This document shows, piece after piece, positions 2,112 to 21,864 of a DNA stretch of 64,000 nt. The stretch spans positions 6,262,001 through 6,326,000 of the forward strand of contig OZ059894.1 in NCBI GenBank assembly GCA_964057225.1. The letters run 5' to 3'. The number at the start of each line of letters is the position of its first letter. Positions within the stretch are counted from its first letter, which is position 1. Source of the stretch: Auanema rhodensis. Its lineage: Eukaryota; Animalia; Nematoda. A program made the position numbers and the translations under genes. Below the pieces are notes generated by a model. It was not told the DNA's origin and searched no databases. It saw only the letters and a program-made list of their open reading frames with translations.

Positions 2112-5100
2112 ATGACGGAAGTTTCGTCAAAGTTGGATAATGTTTCTCTAATGAGTAAATTAAGTATAGGTGATACACAATGGGGGCAACATTACGTCGA
2201 AAGAATCTATCAGGTGAGTTCAGATTGATTTAAATGTCCGAAAAAAGGTATTCAGATCTGTGGTCAAATAAATCCAGGTATGGCTATTGATCTTGATGCT
2301 GTCTTACATATAAAGGACACTATAATTAGGATTCTTGCTGAGGTTTTCTGTATATATGATAAAATGTAAACGAATATTGTTAAGATTCTGGAACCACGCC
2401 CTATGAGCGTATCTGAATTAGAAAAAACTATTCTTCGTGTATTCCCTAAAAGTTTTCATTGGGTTGCTAAGGTTATTTGACAAAAAAACAACAAAACTCT
2501 TCAGGAAAAATTGCTTCAGGAAGCAGCTGAAACCGTATCACATACTAGTCTTCGAAAATTGCATACTGGTCGCTTTGGCTTCTCCCGACAACATGAATTC
2601 CAATCAAAAATGATCAGTCTGGTGGAGGTTCGGACACAAACTTCTGTGAATATTGTAGGCCAACTTTAGAGTGTACTGGGACCTCGAGAAAATGAAAAGA
2701 GAGATCGAGAACAAGAAAAGGAGATAGAAAGATTAGGCTTCTTTGTACAAGCAGTTTGCGAAGGTTTAACTGAGGTTTAATAAATTCATAGAGATATTTT
2801 TGCTAATAAAAGTTCTAGGATATTTTACAATGGACCGGAAATTATGTGAAGCATATTCGTAGCTCAGATCCAAAAATTACTCTTCAAAATTTGCAAATAG
2901 CTATGAATGCTGATAAGGTAAATTTAAAAAATCTAATCAAATAAAGATACAACTAAACATCTATAGGGCCTTATGCAACTTACCAATTTTGTTAATAAGG
3001 AAGAAGAAGATGTATTTGTTGGTGGATTTTTTTCAAATTTTTCTGACTATGAAGAGGATGTTGTCGACGCGAACACTTCTATGCCTAGCGTTACTTACGA
3101 ATCGGTAATGTTATTATATTTTCACGTGAGCATGTCACGTAATTCTTTCGCTAACGAATAATTTCATTTATGCTCTTGATTTTCACAGAACTGGTCGATC
3201 TAGTTGTCTTTATTAATAAAACTAATTCATATGTTTAGATTGCACATGAATTTCTAAAGGAAGAGAGACTGTATCTCCGCGAATTGAATCAAGCCAATAT
3301 TTTCCGAAGACGATTGGAGACTTATTTAAAAGATGATGATAAAGTAAGCTTAATTCAAGAATGAATCATTTATTAAAATTTTCAGGAACTGCTGAAACAG
3401 TTATTCGGCAATTTAAATGAGATTCACGATCTAACCATGAAAGTAGAAAGAACGTTGGAGGATTCCATAGAAATGAATGACGGCTTGTGTATAGGAATGG
3501 GATTTTGGGAATTATCGGAAGCCCATGAATTTGACGCGTAACGTTTCTAATTTTGTTATTTCTATATTTTCGGTATTGTAGGTATTTATCATATCTTTTA
3601 CGTGGAGACGACGACGAACAAATGTATAATACTGCTGTGGAGTCTTGCATAAATGAACTTCTTATTAATCCACAGTATGCTCATATCTTTACGGTAACTT
3701 CATATTTTTTCCTGTTATTATATTTATACTTAGAATGATGATGGTGGCTACGCAAACTCTCTTGAAGGTACAACTTTTCGTTTGGCTGTGAGATGTGTTC
3801 TCTCCAATCTTCTGAATGCTCCTATTATGCACATTTTCAGATACCTGGATTATATAAATGTAAATAGCATTTAAAAATATTTTCTGTTTTATTTTACTAA
3901 TATAGAAATTGTTACGGTTCTGTCAAACAGAAGAAGATAGATCAGATTTGGAAAATTGCAAACTATACTTAAGCAGCGTTGTCAACAAAATTGAAAATCA
4001 ATGTTCTCATTTGAAATCTCGAATTAAACAGTATGTTTTTATTTTCTTATGTGATCATGAATATCTATTACTTTTTTAGAGAACAAGCTGCCAGAAATGA
4101 TTCACGAATGTCGCAGGTTAAAAAGCTGCAGAATATTCAATATACCATTGATGGATTTGAAGGTAATCCCATCGGCCAAACATGCAACGAACTAGTGAAA
4201 GGTAAAAATTAATTATTATTATTATAATACTTTTGTTTTTGTAGAGGGTAATCTTCGAATGGTTCGTCCTTCTGTTGCTATAACGGCTGACATTACCAAA
4301 AAGGGTAAATGGGCAACAGAACGGTATATCAGATTTCCAGAAAAATCATTAAATAATTGAATAATTTCTAGTTATATCTACCTTTTCGATCAATTAATTG
4401 TTTTTTGTAAGAAACACAGATCTACAATCAAGTTCAAAGCCAGAGCAGCTGTGCCTATACTCGATGTGGTTGATCTCGGCAATGCTAATGGTAATAGCTA
4501 TAGTATAATTATTGAAAAAAACTTCTTGATTCAGGTCTAAAACACTCATTTCGCTTGGATATCAGGGAGAAAAGTGGAGAGATGAAGTCATACACTATGG
4601 TATGTAAAAGTGTTGAAGAAAAATCTGCTTGGTTATCTGCTCTTGTTACTGTAACTACGAAGGGGTATTTTCTTTGTTTCGTTATTATAACCTATTTTTT
4701 TATTCTCTTTAGACTGCTCGACAGAATTTTAGATAGCTATCAAAAAGATGAATCTAAGCGGATTCCTCTAATAATTCCGACTCCTGAACAATACAGGTAA
4801 AGCTTTCAACAATAACAATAAAATAAAAAAGCACTATGTGATTAAAGATATGCTGAAGCCGATTCTGAAGAAAATATCATCTTCGAAGATTACACTTCTA
4901 GTAGTGGAGTGCCTGAAATAAAAAGCGGTACTGTATTAAAGCTTGTAGAACGTCTCACTTATCATCAGTAAGTTGTTTTCATCTTGTGCAGTTTTCAACA
5001 GCGTTTTAGATATACTGATAGTAAATTTGTTCAAACATTCTTGATATCGTATCGTACTTTTACAACTCCTAATGATTTGCTGGATCTTCTTATTGAGCGC

Positions 5101-8100
5101 TTCAATGTTCCCATTCCCCTTAAATTGCAAACCCAAGAGATGAGGTACTTGGAAAAATGTTTTCAGAAAAATTTGAATTGTTTTACAGAGGTGGACCTCT
5201 TGCTGGTAGATATGACACGGTTCAGTCTCACGGGTTATCTTCTGGATCGCTACTGTCCAATCGTATTCAAGAACAATGCTATCAACGTTTTAGAAAGGAG
5301 TATGAGCGTCCTATTCATAGAAGGTATTCCGTGTTTCTCACTGTTTGTACATAATACTCAAATTTTCAAGAGTGCTAGCTGTTATGCAGCAATGGGTTAA
5401 AAAACATTGGTCTGACTTTGACAATGATCCCCAATTATTAGAGAAGTTAAAAGATTTTCTGCAGAAGTCTTGCGAAACGCAGGGAAAACTGATCAATCAG
5501 CATAAAAAATTTTGTAAGAGTATTATTGTGAGTGTTGTGTTGTGTATATTTCGCCTATTGTTCTGTGCTCATCTCAAATTTTAAGGCGCTAATTGAGAAA
5601 TTAATTGTTAAAAGTGCTGGACCAATTGAAGCTCAAGCGTCAAATACAGTTTTCGACTTTGATGGCGTAGCTGCTCAAAATAATCGAACTAACCAATTTC
5701 AGCCTAAAAAACCGGAGGTATTAACATCTTACGTATTTTTGATACATAAACTGTTTAGATTGTGTGGCATGTTGCTAAAAAGGGGGACATTGAAAACTAT
5801 GATCTCCTCACTTTACATCCTTTGGAAATTGGACGGCAGGTTTTTTTTTAATAGAGTATCATTAATTATTCTGTTTTTATTTTCTAGCTAACGATATTAC
5901 ATTTCGATCTGTATCGAGCAATTAAACCTAGTGAATTAGTTGATGCAGCATGGACAAAGCCTGATAAACGGCAACGTAGTCCACAACTGCTCAAGCTGAT
6001 TGGTCATTGTACATTGGTATAACTCTTATGATTATCTTGTATGCAATTCCGTTATATTTAGTTAACATATTGGGTATGCCGTTCAATAGTCGATACAGAT
6101 TCAATGGATGAACGAGTAGCCATGTTTAGCCGAGCATTAGAGGTTGTAAAAATCAAACCTTTATGATTATTATTTTTATCGTGTTAAGGTTATGACGGTG
6201 TTTGAAGAATTGCATAATTTCACAGGAATAGTAGCTTTTCTATCTGCTCTTCACTCTTCCAGTGTGAATAGATTGAAAAATTGCTGGGATGTAACGATAA
6301 GCTAAATTTTTCTATTATGATACATTTTTTTTCAGAAACTAGATAGCGAAAAGTTCCAATGCTACACCAGATTTGACAATTTATGTGATTCCAGATATAT
6401 TAATTTAACTAAGAGATTGAAAAGTATCAATCCTCCTTGTGTTCCTTTCTCGGGTATCAACATATTCGATAATTATCATTTATTTATGTTTACAGGGTTG
6501 TATATGTCTACAATTTTCCGATATGAAGCTGGTAATAGTACATTTGTAAAAAACACCCCCGCCGCTGCAGAGAAAGCTAGGGAGAAAGCACAATCTGTTT
6601 GTAAAAACCACTATTTCGAATAATTAAGTCATTTTTGTAGGAGCAGAATAGCAATGAACCATCTTCTCCTCCTGCTGTCGGAAGTAACAAACGAGTGTTA
6701 GTATCGTTTTTCAAATGCCGGAAAATAACCGACCAGATTCGAGAAATCCAGATGTATCAAGATCAACCGTATTATCTACAGGTTGAACCATCCATCAGGG
6801 TACGTTTTTGAAAGCATTAACATATTGTAGTAAACACGAGCAATTATGTTATTAGTTGGTTTATACCTTGACAGATATGTCATAGTTTAGCTGATGATTA
6901 ATAGTATTCTGTTGGATCATTACCACACTAATTATATGTTCCAAAATACTCCTAAAATTATAATTTCAGCAATATTTTGAATCAATCAATCCTACATCGG
7001 ATTTTAATGAAGACGAAGAGGCTTTTCAAACTTATTTGTATAATAGATCGGTCTTGATACAACCTAAGGATGCAGATAAACCTCCTTTGAATAACGTTAG
7101 TTCTTTTTCATATGTAGTTTCATTGACATGACGTTTGTTTAGAAATCAAAACGCCCTCCTCATGTTTTGAAGTCTCCTGGCATCAAACCACCTAAATCTA
7201 ATGTATATACAATGAACACTTCTTCTCATCATCCACAAGCCATGACTGTGCCCAATACTCCAAATCCAGACATGGACGGGTAAAGTTTGAAACTTTTTTG
7301 GGCCTTTCATCTCTTAGTATAAATAATTTATTGAAATAAAATTCTTTCAGACCTAAATCTGCTTTCTTAATGTCGACAAAAGACGACAGTCAGATGTCTG
7401 TTGACTCACACCATATGCGACATTATTCTGGTGAAGGTCCTACTGCGCGACGGATGCAACCTCTACCAAATATTGGTTAGCTGTTCTGTAACTTTCAAAA
7501 TTCTATAATTATATATTAGGTCTATTACCGCCTCCTCCAACATATACTCGTAAGACATCTCCAAAAGCTCCAGCTCCCCTCATTCCATCTGCTGGTCAAC
7601 CTTTTCTACATAAAATGCAGCCTAAGTCTCCGTTGTCAGCTAAAACTCCGCCTACTCCAATGTCGGCTAATCGCACAACAGCTGGTATATCCTTTTTTAG
7701 CTATATATCTCAATACTTCATTATCAGATGCTTTTGTATTTCCTTCAACAGAACCATCTGGTACCCTTCCGATCCGTAATCATCGCTATTCTGGTGATGG
7801 AAATACTATTAGCGAACAAAAAATTGTTTATGAGAGGTATTTTCGGTTTTCTTTCTTCTTTCCGAGTTTTAATTTGAATTCATTAAAAGATTTTTAAAAA
7901 ACCTATTCTTAATTCAGACCTCGCTCCACTGAAGCACATTCCCCTACCGTTTGCCTTTCTGTACCCTTGCCACCAGCCTTGCCACCTAAAAGAACAGTAA
8001 ATGCACAGAATGCCCTACCTCTTCCACCTGCATTACCCCCAAGAAGAGTGGCTCAAGTGCAGCCAACTAGGATAAGGTACGAAACCGTATTCTCATATCA

Positions 8101-8203
8101 CTATTTATTCATTTTCAGCCGTGGAGCTTCTCCACCACCTCCACCACTGCCACCTAAAACTTACAAGCAGAGACTGAACAGTCCGGACCTTCCTCGCCCT
8201 TAA
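2112..8203 (+). CDS. sos-1: Son of sevenless Ras/Rac guanine nucleotide exchange factor (histone fold, DH, PH, REM, Cdc25, Pro-rich tail); multi-exon
   Basis: Hand-spliced peptides: histone fold ([18 protein letters not shown]; [15 protein letters not shown]), DH ([14 protein letters not shown]; [15 protein letters not shown]), PH ([15 protein letters not shown]), REM ([15 protein letters not shown]...[16 protein letters not shown]; [15 protein letters not shown]), Cdc25 ([13 protein letters not shown]; [12 protein letters not shown]; [23 protein letters not shown]), then PPALPPKR / PPALPPRR / PPPLPPK motifs. Stop TAA at 8201-8203, AATAAA at 8587-8592. Confidence 0.97.
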
Positions 8204-8393
8204 AAATAATTCCATATAGTCTTTCTTTTGTTTGTCGTTAATTTAATAATTTGTTGGTTTTTTTAGCTATGAGATCTGATTCTTAATAGTGTTTTTTTGC
8301 ATTTATATTGATATCATATGGTTGAAACCGATTATATGATATCGCTTGTACTTAGATGGTTTTGCTCAAATTTTTTGTGCCTTTTCTCTTTTG

Positions 8394-8556
8394 TTTCTTT
8401 CCTCTGAAAATTGCCTTGGATTTTAAATATCTGAGAGATTATAGATTACTGTGATAAAATTATTAATATTAATCATATTTATGCTGTGCACAACGAGGAT
8501 TATATCTGCTCACGCTTTGCATTATCATTAATTACGGCTGTCATATTGTAATCTGA
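8394..8556 (+). repeat. 163-bp near-identical direct repeat, copy 1 (sos-1 3' UTR)
   Basis: Base-by-base match to 15763-15925 with a single mismatch (ggattTtaaatatc vs ggattTAaaatatc region). Confidence 0.95.
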
Positions 8557-9573
8557 AAATGTTTAAACTTTTTTCCTTTTTTTCCGAATAAATAGTTTTT
8601 ACGGCTTTCTGTTCTTTCGATACTTAAGCAAGCTCAGAAAAAGAGTAAGATTATGTTGTTGAATCAGTGATTAGAGCAATAGAGATAATATATTGTTCTT
8701 GATTTATTTTAAAAGCCACTGCAGATAGATCATCAACAATCAAATAAGCATATCTAGTGTTGCTAATATTTCAAAAATGTTAGAACTTCATTATGTTTTT
8801 ATCATTCTTTTAAATTTTTTAACTGCATATACCTCTATATAGTTATCAGCACATAACTTTATATTAATTTAAAATATAGTTGTTATTATCATTATACATA
8901 AATATGATTAATACGTAATATTCTTAATTAATTAAAATCAGTTATGATCTATTGGGAAAATCATTTAATTTATTCAAACAAATAAATGAACAAAAAACAT
9001 ATAAATTAACATTTATAAAGCTAATGGGATTGAATCATAATATTATTAATATATGGGATATTAACATTTTCTTTTTTTTCAGTTTTTCTTGCGAAGAAAC
9101 TAAATATATTCTCATCTAATCAAGTACAATTATATTAAATACTAATATTAATAAACACAAATTGTGAATAATGTTAGAAAGAATAATGAAACTTTGTTAG
9201 TCATAGCTCAATATGCAACTGCTGATTTTGCATTCATCTGTCTCTTTTACTCCTTTTTTTCTCTAATTCTTAACATCTTTTCCTGCCTCTTTCATCAGTG
9301 GCTGTTTTATATCTCAAGAGGAATTGAATATTCGTTGACTAAATTATGATGAGTCATATTTGTAGGGAATCAATAAGCTTTAGCTGATATTATTTATATT
9401 CAGTATAACTGATTCATAGCCAGTTTGAAAACTCCGCCTCGTTTGCATTGGCATTTAGAGGATTGTTTATAAGATTTAATAGATATTCGTATTTGGTCAC
9501 TTTTATTCATCTTCTTTCACTCTTTATCTCACTTTGCTATTAACATATTAACACCTTACATCAGGTAACTATC

Positions 9574-10047
9574 ATGCTATGCTCTTCATATTTGGAGCAT
9601 AACAGTGTAATTCCCTGGCGGCGAACACACAACAAAGAACGGTTAGTGGACGAAGAAGACGCTTTTCATGAGAATATATTCCAACCTGTTGCCGCTTGTC
9701 TTTTAGTTCAAAAGGTGTTGCTTCTGGATACATTACCAACACACCATTCATGCAACGCATATTTGCCTATAGCTCACTGTACTTCTAATACTCTACCTAT
9801 TCATCAATATCAAGATAAAAACAAAATTTATATGGATTATGAGAACCAATTATTCTCATCACTATCATTATCATCATCAAAAACAACGTCTTCATCTTCA
9901 TCATATCGGTCACAGCAACATTCACACTGCTGTCAGAACTATCTACGTTCCATGAAGTTATCACGTAATTCTCAGAAACGACGAAAAGAACAAATGTGTC
10001 ATTGTTTGTACGTTTTTCTAAATTTTTTGAAAAAGATTTTCACTTGA
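9574..10047 (+). CDS. Orphan 157-codon ORF, possible exon of an unknown gene
   Basis: ATG-initiated open frame that is long for this AT-rich DNA; Ser/His/Cys-rich; donor-like GTACGTTTTT at 10008. No recognisable domain. Confidence 0.25.
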   Translation: MLCSSYLEHNSVIPWRRTHNKERLVDEEDAFHENIFQPVAACLLVQKVLLLDTLPTHHSCNAYLPIAHCTSNTLPIHQYQDKNKIYMDYENQLFSSLSLSSSKTTSSSSSYRSQQHSHCCQNYLRSMKLSRNSQKRRKEQMCHCLYVFLNFLKKIFT

Positions 10048-10672
10048 TTTCACATGCTTTGTTTCTTTTATTATTATTAAATCATTTGATTAAATATTTA
10101 TATCTGAATAATGAATCAAACACCCGAAAGCTATTTGTATTCAAAAGGCGGGTATATGTTGTCTTTGTTTTCTAAATAAAGCATTTTAATTATGATAATT
10201 CATCAATATGCATTATCTAGTTTTACGTAGATGATTATAAAATAGGAAATAGCCGGAAATTAAAATACTCTTGTAATAGTTAGAGCTGAATATGACTCGT
10301 ATGTAGATATAAAATGAAAAAATTTGAAATAATCCTCATCAATTCCGTTGTAATGTCAAGATTGTACCTTGATCTCAACTCCCAACGGAAGAGAATCATC
10401 ATTGTCATCTTTTTGACAGACTTGTCATCACTTTTATAAAGATTCATGTCATTTGATGCAGGATTTATTTCGTCCATATCCAATCATCCGTACTGCTACC
10501 TGACTAATCAAGCTGTGAACATCCACCATACTTCCTTATGGCAAACTGCTCACCTCTTAATAATACGTGTGAATTACTTTTGATGACTGCATATACTCCT
10601 GGTGATGTGGCTCGAGTAATGAGGGCAAGCTGAGATGAAGAGTCGGGATGGGAGGAGTGATGGAAGATGACA

Positions 10673-10682
10673 GGGGCGGGGC
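10673..10682 (+). promoter_or_regulatory. GC box (Sp/KLF-type GGGGCGGGGC) in a locally GC-rich, promoter-like stretch
   Basis: Perfect GGGGCGGGGC, unusual in this AT-rich window, about 130 nt upstream of the ATG at 10814. Confidence 0.45.
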
Positions 10683-10813
10683 TGCAACACTCACTTGAAC
10701 TGGATCACTGGTCCTCCTAACACATAACATTACTTACATTGGTACATATTCACCTCTGACAGTGTACTAGCAGTTTTCTCCTAATCTCACTTGACTTCGA
10801 TTAGTGATCAACA

Positions 10814-10852
10814 ATGGTTTTCCTTGTGATTTGTCTACGTCCTGAAGAGGCA
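10814..10852 (+). CDS. Candidate short first coding exon (MVFLVICLRPEEA), in frame with the duplicated SOS tail
   Basis: caacaATGG start context, 13 codons, then a consensus donor GTAAGT at 10853 in phase 0, matching the phase-0 TTTCAG acceptor before 13604. Confidence 0.4.
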
Positions 10853-13603
10853 GTAAGTTTTTTTCTTTTCTTTTCTTATTTATTATGGTTATATAATACA
10901 TTGAGAATACGTTCAAAATTGTCTTATGTACTTCATTCAAAATATGGTAAAGGCCTGTTTACTATACGATTCATTAATTTCGGCTGTTGCCTCTCACTAG
11001 AAACAGGTGGCAAATCATAGCACTAGTTTAGTATATTTCAGTCTTAATTATGAACACCTCATGCTGAGGACATGAGGGTCCATATCTATGTGTCCTAATC
11101 ATCTCATTACTTCTCCTAATAGCTAATAGGTACATTTTCGTTAGTGTTATGGTCATCATCTGTTGCCCATACATAGATCAAATTGCTAACTGATGATGTC
11201 AGATTACGGTTTATGATTTGCTAAAATCACACCATTTCTTATTGCTATTCCTATACCAATCTCATATATTCAATTAATATTTTAAAATTCAATGCAGTTA
11301 ATGCTTCACATTTGATATTTTGATTGATACAAAGTTTTTGACATGTATTGGAACTCGTCCTGTTTTTTTTTCGAACAATTTTTTTCGTCAAAAAAAGTTC
11401 TCCATCAATTCTTTTCCGCTGTGATAATATGTCCTAAAAATCTTCAGTTTTACCTTTTTTTTTGTGTTGTAGCAAGTAGAAGTGTCATCAAGTCCTCAAG
11501 ACAATAGGCCATTGTTTCATTAAGTGGATTAGGAGTATTTATTTGTTAAGATGTGGCTTTGATATGCCGTCTATAACCTTTTAAAGGAGTCACACGGTTA
11601 ATTAAGATTGTTAAAAGGTAAAACATGCCGACAATCCTCCTGGCAACCTGGAAAGCTGCTCAGTAGGGGGTAGTCATGAGAGCTGTGTGAAAATCTCACA
11701 AATCTGATCTGTACCTTCTTCCCAGCATTGTTCATCTGTTTTTCAAAGTGTGCTGGATCACTTTTTACTTCTTTTTTCTTTCGAAATTTCAATGAAACCA
11801 AAATGTATCTTGGTTTCTCTTCATCCACGCAACTTGCGTAACACTTTAGTTCGATTCCGGTGAGAAAGTTGGAATGTTATTCATCAACATCGCCATCCTA
11901 TTGTGTTGCTAACATTCTAAAAGACATAGAAATATGTTCTATCTATGTATTCCTTTATTGGTTAACATCTTATTATTTCGTTTCCTAGCTGTATAATTTT
12001 TCTTTTGTTACTTTGTCTTGTAAAAAAATCATATAACAGATGAGAATTGGTAAGAGAGTGAAAAAGCGAGCGATAGAGAGAAAGAGAGTAAAAGGTAAAA
12101 GAGAAAAACAATGTATGAATATATGAGTGAAAAGAAAAGCTATATGGTGATGATGATGTGAGGATACTTGCGAATTACGCAACATGAATCATTCTATTCT
12201 TAAGCTTTTGACAGGTGCTCGTTGTAGTATAATTGGGTACTGGATACCAAGTGATCATCTGCTACATTACCTGCTTCTCTTTGACCCATTAAATAGGCTG
12301 GCTACTACTAAAAAATACAAAAAAGCTCTATTGTATAATTAAGTGCTTTGTAAAAACCATATACCATAAAGCCAGGAAGATTGCAGTTCGTTTGTAAGAT
12401 TGCCAAAGCTTTTATCATTATGGATTCAACAGCTTTGAGAATCAGTTATTTATTAAGTCATCAGCTTTGATACAAACATTTAAGCATATGAAAGACAACT
12501 TTCAGCTATCTGATTTCTCTCCTCACATGTATTTATTTGTTTTCTCGTCATAGATGCCCATTTTATCAAAATAATTTGATCAGCCAACTTGTTGTCTTAG
12601 CATTTCTAAGTCGACATCTTCCGCTTTTACTTAGGTCATATGATTAAAGAACTTATTTTTCGCGCATTGTGATAACGGAATTCGTTGAGCTCGAATTCGA
12701 TTAATCGCTTCAGTGATTTCTGGCTTCAACAGAACATCGCTAAATGGTGATGTTTTGATAAATGAAAAACAGTGAATGACACAACTCATGGATGTGTTGA
12801 GAGATCATTGAGAAAAATGTGAGAAGTATGTAGAGAGGGAAGCGAATGATGAGAGAGAAAGAGAAGGGGGGGGGGAAACATTAATGAAAGATACTTCGAT
12901 CATACAGTCAAAATAATGAGAAAAAGATTGAAGAAATGAGAGCGACTAGACTAAACAGACAGCCAGTTTTACTGAATCCTTTTTCGCGTTTTTTTGCTAG
13001 CTCACTAAGTCTGGTTGCCAGTTCTGCTTGTCATATCTCGTGATCAGCGTATCTTTCGTGTTTACCGACTGTTTCCGGTCATCGTTGACCCTGCAGAAGT
13101 TTTTCTTCTGATCTAGTTCTAGCCTTCCAGCGATGATGTCGTTATGATTTTTATTTTTTCTTCTCTTCTGGCTTCATATCATCTCTTGTTTGTCTGCTCA
13201 CCATATTTGGCGTTGACGTTAAACCTTCAAGCGTAGGCCAGCCGCGTGGCTGCGAATGTTATTAATATTTTTGCTGTTTCTTTATTGTTTCAAAAAATAG
13301 AAAAAAAAACTTACTTATAGAATGAATTCATTTCATTTCTGCTGTGTTTGTCCTCAATCTCCTTCAGCTACAAAAGAGTATCAGGTAGATTTTCAACCTG
13401 TCTCAATTTGTAAACTACAAATTGAGCATTATTATGGCTTAATGCCAAGAGTACTTTGCAAATGTTTTTCCTTGTTTTGAATGAAGTCATAGGACGTCTG
13501 TAGTACTGAACTAGTTGGGTCAATGATAGTTCGCGAACTATTATTGATCCAAATTCTCTTAAAAAAAACTTTCTTATCAAATTATTTTTTTAATTGTTTT
13601 CAG

Positions 13604-15572
13604 CAATTCTTTGAATCAATAAATCCATCATCGGAATTTAATGATGATGAAGAAGCTCTACAGACGTATTTATACGAAAGATCTCATAAGCTACAATCTG
13701 CTAAGGGCTATGATAAGACACCTGATCTCAATGTGGTAAGTCAACTTCTCTTGTCACTATGCAATCTTTTTTTTCAGTTTTTCATATATTTTTTAAACTT
13801 TTTGTATGTTTTCAGAAGAACAAACGGTCTCATCTTCTGAAATCTCCAGCTATAAAACCTAAGTCGAATGTATATACCATTCCACAACATCATCAAGAGT
13901 CGACTACACCTTCAGCTCCTCCTCTATCAAACATCAATGAGTAAGTATTTATTCTTTTATGAAACAAAAAACAACAACATGTGAACGTTCTCTAAGCTTT
14001 GTCTTTGGCCCATTCATCCAACTTTCCAAATATTTTTATGGAATTCAGAATATTGTTATGTTTATATGAATATATTGATTAACTTGATGAAGAACACCGA
14101 ATGTATTTCCGTTATGACGACATCTTCGCCATCATGTGTATATATGAGTGTGTATCGTGTCGCAAACTGCATCGCAAAGACATTAAGGTTTCTTTCCACA
14201 CCTGCTACGTATTTCCGGTAGCAAATGAAGTCAAATAATGTTTCTTTTAATCTATAGATTGCGTAAATATTCTGCTTTTTATGTTTTTTCTCACTTTCTC
14301 TCTATATGCATTAGAAGCTATGGTGCGACCAAATTAAGTGTCAGTCGACTTTGGAGAATTCTTTGTAGAGGGTCAGACCGCTCATACTGTCTATCGACTA
14401 TTCACATCCACTTCCGGTATGAGTACATCATCATCATCACCAACTCCCACCTCCCGAACTGTCCTTTCTTCTCAACCGTCCTTATATATAGAGAAGACCA
14501 AATATCAGTCTTTTCATTGTTTTTAGCATTTGATACAACATCATTGAATCGCGTGTCTACTCTAACTACCGACATCATTGTCATTTCTTGTCAACTTCTC
14601 ACTCTCATTTCCTTGCCTGAATGCTGTGTGTGTTCATTCCTACCTTTTCTAAATCTATCACCGTCATCCTATGTAAACAGATTATTTGATCTCCATTTTC
14701 TCCCATTACATATGGTCAATTTCTCAAATGTCATTTCATTCTTTACTTTTCTTCCAGACCAAGATCCGCTTTCTTGATTCCTACAAAAGACGACTGTCTC
14801 ATGACTGTAGATTCAAATCATATTCGTCAGTATACCGGAGAAGGTGCTCCCAACATACGCAAGATGCCAGCTAAAATTGGTTAGTTTTTCACTTGAAGCT
14901 TTTTTCAATTTAATAATATTTGATTTTAAGGTCTTCTTCCACCTCCTCCAACCTATCCTCGTAGGACGTCGCCTAAGCCTCTTCTTATCCCATCTGCTCC
15001 TCCTCAACATCTTCTCCAAAAAATGCAACCACATTCACCTCTGTCTACTCGCACTCCATCTACACCTAAGTCGGCTAATCGCACACCAGCTGGTAAATCA
15101 AGAGATTTACTTTATCTTTGTTACCAATTACATGTTTCAGTATCAGATGCCTTTACATTTCCGTCAGCTGAGCCATCTGGAGCTCATTTAGTCTGTAATT
15201 CTTGTGATGTTAATAACTATGAAAGGTGAAGAAATTATTTGAAATAACCTAATTTTCTAACTTTCTAAATTTCAGACCTCGTTCTGCTGAAGTTAATTCT
15301 CCATCCTCCTCATCACCTCCCGCCTTACCTCCTCGAAGAGGGTCCCATGTTCAGATGACTCCACCTCCATTGCCCCCAAAACCAAAGTGAGTATTTTTAT
15401 AATCTTTTTTTTTCAAAATTCATTCATTTAAACTTAAAATTCATAATCATTTTTCAGCCGAGGAACATCATCACCTCCTCCACTCCCACCCAAAACGTAC
15501 AAACAGAGATTGAATAGTCCAGAATTCCAAAAAAGGAATATGATCTCTACACTCTCACCTGCAGGAAAATAA
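13604..15572 (+). CDS. Intact duplicate of the last seven sos-1 exons (end of Cdc25 domain plus proline-rich SH3-binding tail), 283 aa
   Basis: Exons 13604-13735, 13816-13940, 14758-14879, 14931-15092, 15141-15225, 15276-15386, 15458-15572 correspond one-to-one to sos-1 exons 6970-7095, 7143-7279, 7351-7475, 7520-7684, 7728-7836, 7918-8076, 8119-8203. Internal intron phases are the same (0,2,1,1,2,2) and the entry is phase 0. Total 852 nt with no internal stop. Examples: QFFESINPSSEFNDDEEALQTYLYERS vs [27 protein letters not shown]; [16 protein letters not shown] in both. Confidence 0.9.
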
Positions 15573-15762
15573 TCTAATTTTCTAACCATCTTTATTAGTT
15601 CAACGCTTGACACTACCCTCTCATTTCTGATAATACCAATTCGAGTTTTGGCTTTTTTGCCTTCCTAATTGTTTTTTTTGTGTCGGATATAATTCATCTT
15701 TCAAGCCATTGATGACATGATCTCGTTTGTACTTAGATAGAGTTTCGCTCAAATCTTCTTCA

Positions 15763-15925
15763 TTTCTTTCCTCTGAAAATTGCCTTGGATTTAAAATATC
15801 TGAGAGATTATAGATTACTGTGATAAAATTATTAATATTAATCATATTTATGCTGTGCACAACGAGGATTATATCTGCTCACGCTTTGCATTATCATTAA
15901 TTACGGCTGTCATATTGTAATCTGA
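15763..15925 (+). repeat. 163-bp near-identical direct repeat, copy 2 (3' UTR of the duplicated SOS tail)
   Basis: Matches 8394-8556 at a constant offset of 7369 bp, 1 mismatch. Confidence 0.95.
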
Positions 15926-16097
15926 TAAATTTAAAAACATTTTCCCTTTTATATCATTTTTGAAACAAAATTTATCCAAATTGTCATTTATATTGCTCCA
16001 AATAATGATTAAATCATCATCTATAATTCAAATGTACAGAAAAGAGAATCTGAATCAAAAAAGTACGTTCTTGGTTTTTATCCTCTATGTGTACTTA

Positions 16098-16825
16098 CCA
16101 TACTTGCAAGATGTACTTTAACTTGAAAAGGAAGCATCAACTTCCGAATCAACCCGTACACACATGGAAATGATCAAAAATCAGATATTATAGTTATATG
16201 ACTAAGTTGAGCTTGCACAGTTGATTGCAGGTAAGTCTGAGCTTTGTTTCCAAAAATAAGATCAGCAGTCTTCGAATTTACTATGAAACCAGTTTTATGA
16301 TGTATTTCTTTATCTAGATAGAGAACATCATGTGGAACTAAATCAAAGATAGAAATACCACATTGGAATAACATAACATTCTTATATTTTTTTCTTTGGG
16401 TTAAAATATTTTTTTGATAAAAAAAGACATATATTTGGACTATGAAAATCAAAACAATGAAATCAACACCGCTTATCCTATTTCTGAGAGATTTGAAAAA
16501 ATCTTATTGTCAAGTCATTGCTTGAACATATGATTTTTAATCTGTGAACTTGACATCGTTTTTTTTAAATGATTAGCATGGTTAAGAGCACCTCAATATG
16601 GAATGATACCAAAAACTATGCTGGGATTCAGCGTCATCTGTAGTTCCAAAAAAATCTCAGAACATTGATTGATAAGTTCTGTTCGCTGGGTTTGATTCAT
16701 TCTCAAAACTTTTTTTGTGATTTTTCATTTGCGACCTCTTGACGACATGCACTACGTCGTAGTTATCATCATAAAGTATTTTCTGAGGTTGATGCCCTTA
16801 TCAATTTTCATGCAATTTGAAGTCA
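16098..16825 (-). pseudogene. Possible decayed coding sequence of unknown family
   Basis: Protein-like fragments in alternating frames broken by stops and frameshifts (MNQTQRTELINQCSEIFLELQMTLNPSIVFGIIPY*; FQCGISIFDLVPHDVLYLDKEIHHKTG; DHFHVYGLIRKLMLPFQVKVHLASM followed by GTAAGT). Confidence 0.25.
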
Positions 16826-17085
16826 TTTTCTTTTAAAAAATAGCTTAAAATAAATGAAAAAAAGAAAATTATGGATTATGAATTGCTCAATAGTAAAATA
16901 TACAATTCTTTAAGTATTAGTCAATCTTTTTTTTTAATTGTTTGTTGTTTGAACACAACTAAAAGATATTGATTAGTGTTATTCTGATGTTATAAATCCA
17001 ATCCAAATAATATTAAATATAACTATTATGCTTTATTTAACTGACATTTTAAATAAATAATAATAACATATTAATATTAATATTA

Positions 17086-17112
17086 ATATATATATATATA
17101 TATATATATATA
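17086..17112. repeat. (TA)n microsatellite
   Basis: About 13 uninterrupted TA units. Confidence 0.95.
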
Positions 17113-18592
17113 CTTTGTTATAATTAATTCTAAAACTTTTTCAAAGTGATTGTCGTAAAGTTTAAATTAGAACCTGGAAAGGTTTATGTTCAAACATCAG
17201 ATCTATTAGATATTGGATTTCTTATTTTTGAAAATAAGTTAGACATATAAAACATTTTAGAAGATATTATATAAATCTGTATTTATAAATAATATCTTTT
17301 CAACTAAGATTTATAACCACTAAAGAAGGCGTTCTGATTTATACTCATAATCCTTATGTTATATCCTTCATAAAACATATATAAGAAATCGAAAAGAGAA
17401 TAGATAAAGATTTGATTATTCGAATTAAACAGATTTTTTCTTATTTTTTTTGTTTAATTCACAAGAATTACGAATAGAATGAATCATATTATCCAATCTT
17501 CAAACTATGATATCAACACAGGATTTGAATGATCAATGAAACCAATATGAGCATTATATCTCTTGACCAATAATACAGGGGTTTCATCTGTTTCCCAAGC
17601 TCTTTTTATAATTTTAGAGAAAGCAACCAATTACATATGTGTATTAACATGATATGACAATTGTTTTTTCAAATTTTTTAAACTTTTCGGCGAAACTAAA
17701 CGTTTCTTAGAATATCGTTTGTTTGAAATTCCTAAAGCAATGAGGCTATTACTGTATTATGGCCAAACTGTTGGTGTCGAGATTTCATAAGCAAATCAAA
17801 CATCATATTTTCTTTTTTTTTTCGATGACCAAAGAGATGGAACATAAACGATTTGCATCTCTCATGCATAATAAAACATCTAAATTTTTTTTTATACATA
17901 CGGAAAGAACACGAATTCCTTAACGATATGAAGGTGTATAAAGGGAAGGTCAGTTAGTCCATTTCATGACCTACTTGCTTTGAATAAAAGGAATACGTAT
18001 GTACAACATATATACGAAGGCGACAAGGTCGCTTGTTCCAGCTACTATTATTGCTACTAGTTAAATTCCCACGATTTTTCTTTTTCAACTTTACCTACAC
18101 TCAGCATGTTCTGAAAACTTTTTTTGACACACCTGTATCGTTCTCCAACATTTTCTCAGCTCGTATCCAAAATAACTACCAAGCTCAGAATACATTTTTT
18201 TCAAATTACGGTCAGTAATCAGCAAAAAAGAGAGGCAATTATCGATGTTTTAGTTTAAGGAACAGAAAAATTTAAGTTATTTCCTAATCTTCATCATTCG
18301 TTCAAAATTGTTTTTATTTTTAGTAAAAAGTTTGTTAAATTATTTAGAATACGATGAGAGTGCTGTAACGATAATTTGTGATAAATTTCTTCTAAACATT
18401 CGTATCAATTATTCCATCTTTCGTATTTTTTCAAACGATTCATTAATCCTGTCCTCATTCTCAGAGAAGTTTGATTCTTTTAGATGTTTCTCTCATTCTA
18501 ATCCGAATCATATATACAAGAAAATATTTTTTACTCAATGAACTATGCTTTGAATAATTTTATGAAATTTTATAATTTTTTTTTAGATAATT

Positions 18593-18808
18593 ATGAACAG
18601 AAATCAGATCATATGCTTTGTATTTCTTATTATTTTTTCAATTGTAATGGCTGAACTTTCCATTGATGGAGATGAGGTAATATTTTAAGAAATATTTCAT
18701 TTCATTCAATTTGTTAATGTTAATTTTTATTTTTTAAATTATTTTATTTAGTTGGTTCTATCAATGAAAGAAAATGTTCGTGTTCATCGTGCTGACGAAA
18801 CTCTCTAA
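18593..18808 (+). CDS. Small secreted peptide precursor, 46 aa, two exons (18593-18676, 18752-18808)
   Basis: TTTTAG acceptor 6 nt before the ATG. MNRNQIICFVFLIIFSIVMA signal peptide, ELSIDGDE, phase-0 GT-AG intron, LVLSMKENVRVHRADETL*. AATAAA at 18907-18912. Confidence 0.7.
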
Positions 18809-19309
18809 ATATGAAAAATGACAAATTGAATATTTTTAAATTATTAAATTAAAGATATAAATTGACATGTCTTAATAATATGTTTGTGTCGTATATTTAT
18901 TTGATGAATAAAATAATTATAACTCAAAGCAAGCATTTTAACCTGTTTTTTTTTTGAAAATATGAATAGTAAATATTCAATTTCAATTGATTATTTCATT
19001 TGATAATATAAGAAATTAATAAAATCAAAATAAGTAATGAACTGATCAATGATAAATTAAAAAAGATTTATGGGAATCAAATCAAATATACAATACAGAA
19101 TGAATCATGTATACAACATTTATTGATAATCTACAATTTAAAAAATTGGAATGAGAACGAAAGTAGATTTTAGAAGGACACACAGCGTTTTATTTTTTTA
19201 AATGATTAAAAATTGATTAAATAGAAACAAATTATCAATAAGTGAGAAAGATTTTCAACGTTTATGAGAGAGAAAAAGCTGTATAATTGGTATCTATCTT
19301 CGGAAATTA

Positions 19310-21864
19310 TCAATATTGATTGAAGCAACTTCTTTCAGCACGGTCAATTTGGCTAATAAGTTGAGCAAGTTTTCTTCTAACTTTTTTCTGATCATCAGCT
19401 GTACATTCAATAACCTATAATATAAGATATTCATGCATTTACGATCACATATTTGAAAAAAAAAAGTTTATAATCCCTACTTGAGATTGGAATCTTTGAT
19501 CAATTGGTCCTTCAGGTTGGTCTGGAGAACAAGCATTCAAATATCTACGAGCAGTCTGAAAATATTGATGATAACCGTCAATCAAATTGGAATCTTACTT
19601 CCTTTCCATTTTTGATATCTTCTTCAATTTTTCTCATGACAGTATCAATCATGGTATTGACAGTAGATAAAGCTTGCTGTTGCTCATAAGTTCTTGGGGT
19701 ATTTACAACAACTTCAACAGTTTTGGTTCGAGAAGCCAATCTATTAGTTGTAGCAGTAATATCATCTCGATCACCTAAAAAAGTAAAAATGATTAAGAGG
19801 TTTATGGGTACATGGACACATGGGTATTAACTTATAATATTTAAAATGATAATACTCTAAAAATGACTTATTCTTCTCGTTTTTGAGATAACGATATTAG
19901 AACATACCTTGTCCCAATCTTAAAAGATCAGTATTAATAGCAACATTATTGAGAACATCCAAAATTTGATCCTTTTCTTGTTCCAAAGTTGCTGCTGCTT
20001 CTCTAAAATTTGAAAAATTACGTTTATTTCTTTATTTCTTTATGTTTAATTTACTCATATAATCAGTTAATTATCTTTCTCAACAAAAAAAAGATGTGTG
20101 GGAGGAGAAATGAACTATTGCATTTTTAAAGTTTTGAATGATAATATTGTAATTTGATATCGATTATCATTACAATAAATCAATGATGATAAATATTGAG
20201 ATAGCAATGAAACTTTGATTATTGAACACATTCTTTAAATATTAAAGAAAATATTTTTTATAATATGAAATAGGATATTTTATTTGAAAAGAATGATCAT
20301 AACAAACCTAAGCTGTTCAACTCTTTTCTCAACGTCATCCAACATGTTAACGATTTGCTCATTGAAATCATCAATACTCTTATTTCGAACTATTTGAACA
20401 GGAACATTTCTTGTATGAGCAGACATTCTAGAGAATCTGAAATAAAATAATGGATAAGATTAAAATAATTTTTTTTGCTTTTGAATAAAATATAATTTAT
20501 TGAGTTGTGATGTTTAGAAAGAAAGTAGATATGGTTGAAATATATGATAACACTATATATGAAATATATAAAAACAATTTAAAAAAAGAGTAAAATAAAA
20601 TAAAATGGGAAAACAACAAACAGCTATATGTAAGGTAATAGGCAATTATCTGTGACATAATATACCTTAAAGTAAAATATATTTGACAATAAGGATCATT
20701 GAAAACTAGACAACTAGCTAGAAGTTAGACATGAATATGATTTGTGAAACAGTGGTGCGAAATATACATTGCTAACTAGTCATTACTTTGTGTTAGCTAT
20801 TGAGGTGACTTATCTATCGAACTTTATACTCAAAGCTAACAGTAACAAGAGCATATGTGAAGAGTTCATGTAACTCAGAGAGACCTGTAATTGAAAAGAT
20901 GGCATCATCATCAAACACTATGTGGGCTGAGAGTATATGTCGCAGATGCTACAACTGGATTTAAAAAAAAGGGAAATTTCGTAACTAATAAAGACAAGTG
21001 AGCATTTTATAGAAAACGTTAAGAATCAATCATACGATTTCTGAACACATTGATCAAGTTATTTCGATGTTAAGAAGTTAAATAGAACTGGAGTTTTGAT
21101 GGAGAGTAAAGAGCGAAACTTTCAGGTAAGTATCTTAGTGGCTGAAACAATCAAATCAAATCAAGGAAATAATAGAAAGAGGTACATACATGGTTAACAA
21201 CGTTTACAGAGAACAAGAGGCTGAATAGATAAGAATGAGAGAACTGTTAAGAAATAATTGAAGAGAATGGACAAGGTGAGCGAAAGATAGTGATGTGATA
21301 GAAATTGCGGGGGGGGGAGTTGAGAGTTGAAAAGCCGAAAAAACAGGCTCTTTCGTTAATTAATAACAAGGAATTATTACATGATTATCAGTAAAAAAAT
21401 GACAAAAACATAGAACAAATAAAATGATGAAAATTGGAGAACTTTCAGGTTAGAGCATAGCGTTAATGTTGTTAACATGCGAGCACTGCAGCGTGCTGTT
21501 TCAAATTTTGAGAAGCATTGAAAAGCAAACCTTGGAGTAATGATGTCAATATCCTCTTCTGGGAATTGTTCTCTAGAGAATCGGCTATAATAAAATTAGA
21601 AAATTAAACGAATCAACTCATAAGTTTGATGAAATAAAATTCACAGAATCTGCACTTGTAAAGTTGAAATAGCTATTTTTAAGTTTTTAGTTAGCAAAAG
21701 CTTAAGTTATTATAACAAAAAGAATTTTCGATAAAAAAAACAACAAAAGAAGTAAATAAAGTAACAAAAATTGGCAAAACATTATTCATTCCATCAGTCT
21801 TTAAGAAGTACCTGGTGTTGGGCAATTGGCCATTCCTTTTGAGGCTATCTAGATAAGCTGCCAT
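19310..21864 (-). CDS. unc-23: BAG2-family Hsp70 co-chaperone (UNC-23-like); multi-exon
   Basis: Spliced product: MAAYLDSLKRNGQLPNT...MLDDVEKRVEQLREAAATLEQEKDQILDVL...GDRDDITATTNRLASRTKTVEVVVNTPR...YLNACSPDQPEGPIDQRFQSQVIECTADDQKKVRRKL. This aligns with BAG2 ([20 protein letters not shown]...[26 protein letters not shown]). TTTCAG precedes the ATG; TGA at 19312-19310. Confidence 0.92.

Follow-up and report, generated by a model that had tools for sequence, protein, structure and literature searches.

A probable independent gene for a catalytically empty, leader-plus-tail SOS protein beside sos-1 in Auanema

LET-23/EGFR, SEM-5, SOS-1 and LET-60/Ras form one of the most thoroughly dissected signalling pathways, and a conserved second product of sos-1 would be an unstudied player in it. 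Engineered C-terminal fragments of SOS act as dominant-negative GRB2 binders, and Grb3-3 is a natural isoform of GRB2. GAP-43 (MLCCMRR) and PSD-95 (MDCLCIV) are palmitoylated at their N termini, and LAT is a palmitoylated adaptor. Here, we analyse a 64,000-nucleotide window of the nematode Auanema rhodensis (contig OZ059894.1, positions 6,262,001–6,326,000), in which the exons for the SOS tail occur twice downstream of the sos-1 catalytic exons, as copy A and copy B. Copy B is transcribed from its own first exon and would encode a short protein consisting of a Cys-rich leader and the SOS tail. Our search of the literature found no description of a tail-only SOS isoform.

The closest described relatives of this product are the C-terminal regions of SOS-1/LET-341 in C. 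elegans and of human SOS1, with which it shares the homologous last Cdc25 helix and repeated PPxLPP[RK] class-II SH3 ligands. The copy-B gene differs from both in having its own first exon, its own start codon and, in Auanema, diverged tail exons.

Copy B and its transcripts

The gene sos-1 is complete on the forward strand from position ~2112 and is collinear with SOS of Auanema sp. JU1783 (P0009, 1,377 amino acids). The composition of the window is nematode-like, being AT-rich with acceptors of the ttttcag type. The last catalytic exon, which is also the last common exon, ends in phase 0 (...VEPSIR|gtacgt). Copy A begins 170 nt past it, encodes 301 amino acids and is orthologous to the tail of the JU1783 protein, serving as the tail of full-length SOS-1 (Table 1).

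Copy B is an intact, spliced and expressed duplicate of these tail exons. Its seven exons form an open frame of 852 nt (283 amino acids plus the stop) behind the acceptor ttttcag|CAA, and match copy A exon by exon, with the same borders and phases, as expected from descent from the sos-1 tail. The first exon starts at the same border as in SOS (...IR|QFFESINP; human ...RFFENLNP). In the duplicated block, 6964–8580 matches 13598–15950; this match is beyond chance, begins six bases ahead of the acceptor and stops at the end of the 3' untranslated region (3'UTR). Coding exons are 73–80% identical between the copies, while the introns are otherwise unalignable. The encoded proteins share 60% identity over 268 aligned residues. 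Exon lengths differ by +6, −12, −3, −3, −24, −48 and +30 nt, every one a multiple of three.

To follow transcription, assembled contigs from four RNA runs (X1–X4) were placed on positions 9700–15699, where a gap in the contigs does not prove absence. The runs hold 31–51% of sampled words from 13604–15572, approximately the expectation from the exons alone. All six internal copy-B junctions were found in 4/4 runs. The acceptor at 13604 was joined to a donor at 13384, again in all four; the reported coordinates of this joint are 13380 and 13600, its exact placement being ambiguous over four letters, TCAG, which occur on either side. Every copy-B exon is present in the contigs, whose path from 13384 to 13604 has no branch, so that other donors to this acceptor are absent or rare. 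The contigs start at 13138 (X1), 13177 (X2), 13178 (X3) and 13355 (fourth run) without loose, unaligned ends, and finish at ~15823, within a 3'UTR block common to copy A. Depth was zero over 10100–11899 in every run, showing that the signal is RNA and that these libraries are free of genomic DNA background over this region. Exon 1b, the first exon in the RNA contigs, comprises a 5'UTR and the leader; its 5' limit is a contig end, and the true start may lie slightly upstream. Copy B thus belongs to its own transcription unit, with its own 5' end and first exon and without upstream sos-1 exons in the transcript. JU1783 likewise carries a separate gene model for a tail-only protein.

The initial annotation of this locus had proposed a separate, catalytically empty SOS-tail gene that starts at an ATG at 10814 and splices from 10852 to 13604. 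The separate gene is borne out by the transcripts from 13138 and by the JU1783 ortholog. The start is not: the junction 10852^13604 is absent from the four runs, in which exon 1b, with its ATG at 13322, takes the place of the exon at 10814–10852.

Two further features of the transcripts were observed. Low-depth contigs (2–5) cover the 3' part of the large intron (X1, 14379–14787; X2, 14540–14757; X3, 14563–14717), and the X1 piece runs unspliced into the exon at 14758, as a retained intron or an internal start would. If transcription starts at or before 13138, the 5'UTR in exon 1b contains two short upstream open reading frames (13145–13237 and 13255–13299), which are not conserved in JU1783.

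Coding constraint and relatives in other nematodes

The ATG at 13322 is the first start codon past an in-frame stop, and its frame continues into QFFESINP, giving a product of ~304 amino acids with the leader-to-tail junction ATKEYQ|QFFESINPSSEF. This product would contain the last Cdc25 helix followed by the Pro-rich tail; the histone fold, DH-PH, REM and the Cdc25 core are all absent. With transcripts of leader and tail exons only, the gene lacks the Cdc25 (PF00617) and REM domains that define RasGEFs. Five class-II PxxPxR/K SH3-ligand motifs are present (PTYPRR, PALPPR, PPLPPK twice and PPKPNR). As the initial annotation had noted, these motifs are retained while the Cdc25 end motif has changed from SVLIQP in copy A to SHKLQS in copy B. 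This drift is confined to this species, since SLKIQP is retained in the B copy of JU1783.

Searching with the tail of JU1783 SOS identified its B ortholog, a 276-residue 'unnamed protein product' (P0018) in which the leader is followed by QFFESIN. Its contig, L001 (5,620 nt), is collinear with 10813–14523 of the window, and the B loci of the two species correspond in the leader exon, in non-coding blocks and in a large second intron, which contains an element of 90% identity. The leader of the window is identical in amino acid sequence to residues 1–21 of the ortholog. At the nucleotide level 11 of 63 bases differ, all at third positions and all synonymous, which indicates strong purifying selection on the leader peptide. 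The PxxPxR/K motifs are kept in the B copies of both species. In the annotated ortholog a single exon (127 nt, L001 5197–5323) stands where the RNA-supported window model has two (85 and 111 nt), reflecting either imperfect annotation or a differing exon structure.

Between copies A and B, the non-synonymous rate (dN) is 0.28 and the synonymous rate (dS) 1.28, a dN/dS ratio of 0.22. The frame of copy B is not disabled and its evolution does not look neutral. One would not expect a relic of such age to retain an open frame of 852 nt together with fourteen splice signals, which argues that copy B is coding and under selection. On these sequence comparisons, copy B diverges faster than copy A yet appears to be under purifying selection.

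Short predicted proteins that join a Cys leader to the SOS tail also occur in C. tropicalis (A0A1I7U6D4), C. bovis, Dictyocaulus viviparus (DICVIV_04225), Syphacia muris, Steinernema carpocapsae (L596_011042) and the filariae Acanthocheilonema, Cercopithifilaria and Onchocerca, where the entries carry automatic or 'uncharacterized' names. Their leaders align to the consensus MLSCxLCCCCxQSPPxTPS and join the first tail exon in phase 0, and the CCxC cluster at leader residues 7–10 is nearly invariant over 12 aligned leaders. Pfam gave no match at E ≤ 0.1 in the JU1783 ortholog and four other short forms. Short matches of the type M..CFQ|QFFESINP or MKCFKE|FFESINP were rejected as short isoforms, being open-reading-frame calls that read through an intron end (tgttttcag = C-F-Q).

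Three loci outside Auanema were read, those of C. brenneri, C. bovis and S. carpocapsae. In each, a single set of sos-1 tail exons is present, and the leader exon stands between it and the last catalytic exon. In C. brenneri, the last catalytic exon of the annotated full-length SOS-1 ends at 7935 and is followed by a 9.2-kb intron. The leader exon lies inside this intron (ATG 16990, donor gtatgc), 84 nt before the tail exon at 17143, and full-length SOS-1 uses the same tail exons. This layout recurs in S. carpocapsae and C. bovis, where the annotation gives two gene models for the locus, one for the catalytic part and one for the tail alone. The leader exon lies 79–367 nt upstream of the tail exons in other nematodes, and the intron that holds it measures 6.7 and 9.2 kb at the two loci with both ends located. 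In a phylogenetic tree, the short forms of other species have short branches and adjoin the tails of full-length SOS proteins from close relatives, which fits shared exons rather than diverged paralogs. Because the leader exon stands between catalytic and tail exons in other nematodes, the tail-only product would be older than the Auanema duplication, an alternative-promoter product of sos-1 of long standing. A newly captured promoter and first exon, as the initial annotation had it, does not agree with a Cys leader joined to the SOS tail in predictions from several nematode orders.

In the long sos-1 intron of C. brenneri (L005 13394–13612) we also observed a conserved, coding-like exon matching the long leaders (…SDPPE…RFSCAIVESTSITP…) of tail-only proteins in C. 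briggsae and C. remanei. The short product of Caenorhabditis may therefore start from a distal first exon as well as from the Cys-leader exon.

Table 1 Features of the sos-1 and copy-B loci (positions in the 64,000-nt window)
Feature	Position	Strand	Basis or remarks
sos-1 catalytic part (histone-fold, DH-PH, REM and Cdc25 exons)	2112–6799	+	tblastn with JU1783 SOS (P0009), collinear over 2112–6808
Tail copy A, seven exons	6970–7095, 7143–7279, 7351–7475, 7520–7684, 7728–7836, 7918–8076, 8119–8203	+	Open frame, AG/GT borders
Copy A 3'UTR block	8394–8556	+	162/163 identical to 15763–15925
GC box GGGGCGGGGC	10673–10682	+	141 nt upstream of ATG 10814; candidate distal promoter element
Mini-exon ('exon 1a'), 13 codons MVFLVICLRPEEA	10814–10852	+	Candidate alternative first exon; RNA depth zero in X1–X4
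Conserved block, likely proximal (core) promoter	13019–13105	+	Matches JU1783 contig L001 3176–3275, with long invariant runs
Exon 1b, first exon seen in RNA (5'UTR and leader)	13138–13384	+	Contig ends, 13384^13604 joint
Leader coding sequence, 21 codons MNSFHFCCVCPQSPSATKEYQ	13322–13384	+	Phase-0 donor, Cys cluster
Inverted repeat, 17-bp hairpin in intron 1	13515–13552	+	52–89 nt upstream of acceptor 13604
Tail copy B, seven exons	13604–13735, 13816–13940, 14758–14879, 14931–15092, 15141–15225, 15276–15386, 15458–15572	+	Open frame, AG/GT borders
Copy B 3'UTR block	15763–15925	+	162/163 identical to 8394–8556

Several non-coding elements accompany the gene. The conserved block of likely promoter sequence sits directly upstream of the contig starts at 13138–13178. 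The hairpin in intron 1 folds as RNA with −20.5 kcal/mol (z = −6.3), and its JU1783 counterpart (L001, about 3647–3684) with −18.3 kcal/mol (z = −3.95); it might control splicing or serve as a palindromic site for protein binding. A 72-nt element in the large intron 2 of copy B (14209–14280; L001 4229–4299) reaches 90% identity across the two species, well beyond the level of the intron around it, and has no Rfam match. Between the mini-exon and exon 1b, further conserved blocks with long invariant motifs were observed at 11501–11681, 12617–12645 and 12687–12764, which are probably enhancers of the tail-only gene; as exons, the patches 11501–11681 and 12617–12764 were rejected for lack of codon periodicity. 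An Rfam search of 8200–16200 gave no match at E ≤ 0.1.

Origin of the two-gene state and competing explanations

The tails of copies A and B from both Auanema species form one clade in the tree (support 100/100), within which the two A tails group together (81/88). Branch lengths are 0.36 and 0.69 for the B tails versus 0.22 and 0.25 for the A tails. Most simply read, the tail block was duplicated in tandem once, ahead of the split between the two species. In the ancestor, the leader exon would have been an internal alternative first exon, with the tail shared with full-length SOS-1. Tandem duplication of the tail block, from the first tail exon through the 3'UTR, would then have occurred in the Auanema lineage. 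Copy A, placed directly past the catalytic exons, would have become the tail of full-length SOS-1. Copy B, about 6.5 kb past the catalytic exons, would have remained where the tail originally lay, following the leader exon, and so would serve the short product only. One gene with two promoters and a common tail would in this way have become two adjacent genes, after which the freed B tail diverged faster. The 3' ends of the copies would subsequently have been homogenised by gene conversion. For the 163-nt block in the 3'UTRs, which has no alignable counterpart in the JU1783 sos-1 3'UTR, recent gene conversion is likelier than deep constraint. The last coding exon also appears homogenised between the copies within each species.

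We therefore favour an independent, expressed gene beside sos-1 for a non-catalytic leader-plus-tail SOS protein, an old product separated from its parent by duplication, and assign this reading a probability of roughly 0.72. Several points weigh against it. The four RNA runs come from one study, and assembly into contigs drops rare forms and leaves 5' ends approximate. The tail-only protein is a prediction from genomic and RNA sequence, and its palmitoylation and SEM-5 binding are proposed by analogy with N-terminal Cys clusters of the GAP-43/PSD-95 type and with the PxxPxR sites of SOS. Between the two Auanema species the B tails share just 51% identity, so that much of the tail is weakly constrained. 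Between-species comparisons of B with B and of A with A were saturated in dS and gave no B-specific dN/dS ratio. The same tandem order is likely in JU1783, as suggested by the size and flanks of an assembly gap: scaffold L002 has 5,602 N (15905–21506) directly past the sos-1 3'UTR, versus 5,620 nt for L001, and the L001 ends resemble both flanks of the gap, as those of a tandem copy would. That assembly probably broke on the repeated 3'UTR. Finally, no short C. elegans protein was among the matches to the C. tropicalis short form; in C. elegans the isoform may be unannotated, weak or lost.

A first alternative concerns the exon at 10814–10852. The initial annotation described a GC box, an ATG in the context caacaATGG, 13 codons and a phase-0 GTAAGT donor at 10853, all of which are present. 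Donor 10852 and acceptor 13604 are both in phase 0, and splicing them would indeed give an open frame of 296 amino acids (13 + 283). The exon is shared with JU1783 (L001 1416–1454), with the same ATG, 13 codons MVFVVICLRPEEV and GTAAGTT (through 1461). Eight of the ten differences fall at codon position 3 (Fisher p = 0.0007), whereas the flanks are 25–30% identical and unalignable. Both the window and L001 contain a single occurrence of the motif G[AG]GGCGG[AG]GC, placed 141 and 149 nt, respectively, ahead of the mini-exon ATG. GC box and exon together look like a conserved promoter-plus-first-exon module, and on this comparison the exon may well serve the tail-only gene as an additional first exon in a distal position. 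Against it stand the zero depth over this region, within the limits of contig evidence given above, the unbranched path from 13384 into 13604, and the JU1783 annotation, which uses the Cys-leader exon only. An exon-1a-like peptide was absent from the sos-1 loci of C. bovis, Steinernema, C. brenneri and JU1783. Being shared, the exon dates at least to the common ancestor with JU1783, which does not suit a recent capture. An acceptor-like site at 13131 was rejected as a splice partner of exon 1a, since the joined frame would meet a stop immediately. Use of this exon as the start of the gene, or in a variant as a minor or stage-specific alternative first exon, is possible, though we consider it somewhat doubtful.

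Copy B might instead be a switchable second tail of SOS-1, reached when the transcript skips copy A and splices 6799^13604. Both sites are in phase 0, and such a splice would be ancestral, since in other nematodes the catalytic exons splice over a 6.7–9.2-kb intron to the tail behind the leader exon. On the stretch covered by RNA contigs, 9700–15699, this form would be visible through loose ends only; none was found at 13604 in the four runs, and no contig ties copy B to anything upstream of 13138. Moreover, copy A ends with its own AATAAA at 8587, and no Auanema protein combining the catalytic part with a B-type tail was found. We regard this alternative as unlikely. Less probable still, indeed very improbable, is that copy B survives as a transcribed relic without protein function, either a pseudogene that is still expressed or a non-coding RNA. 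Fast divergence of the B tails between species, loss of the SLxIQP motif in this species and the lack of Pfam domains among the short forms are in its favour. It is opposed by the frame that stays open at a dS of 1.28, the low dN/dS ratio, length changes that are all in frame, splice sites that are all used, the synonymous pattern in the leader and the retention of PxxPxR/K motifs in both species.

Proposed function and relation to known systems

For the gene favoured here, we propose that the Cys cluster of the leader is S-palmitoylated and would hold the tail at membranes, where its PxxPxR/K motifs would bind the SH3 domains of SEM-5/GRB2 and perhaps of other SH3 proteins. Speculatively, S/T-P sites past the Cys cluster could be kinase targets. 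Depending on its amount and place, the tail-only protein could compete with SOS-1, buffer or pre-position the adaptor, or nucleate assemblies without exchange activity. Such a role would be that of a decoy or adaptor.

More tentatively, nematodes in general, and probably the Caenorhabditis models too, may make a lipid-anchored, catalytically empty SOS tail from an internal sos-1 promoter, a hitherto unrecognised RTK–Ras pathway component that would bind SEM-5/GRB2 at membranes and tune or redirect signalling; we hold this broader proposal with less than even confidence. In Auanema the product would be encoded by a separate gene, removable without touching SOS-1. If the proposal is true, C-terminal tags and 3' alleles of sos-1 would affect both products, while the natural separation into two genes makes the function of the short product directly testable in Auanema. 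What would be new in the Auanema lineage is the duplication that turned two products of one gene into two genes. The locus would also illustrate cleanly how a partial tandem duplication can resolve two products of one gene, after which the copy set free diverges faster.

Relative to the short proteins of other nematodes, the Auanema product has the same build, but its tail is private and evolves faster. It resembles engineered SOS fragments and Grb3-3 in being a truncated pathway component with the binding module only, able to compete with the full-length protein; unlike them, it is naturally encoded, conserved in nematodes and probably lipid-anchored. The likeness to GAP-43, PSD-95 and LAT, for which we claim no homology, lies in a Cys cluster within the first ten residues beside hydrophobic residues, with the remainder of the protein docking adaptor domains. 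Whereas LAT recruits GRB2 through phosphotyrosine and the SH2 domain, the tail-only protein would do so through SH3 ligands.

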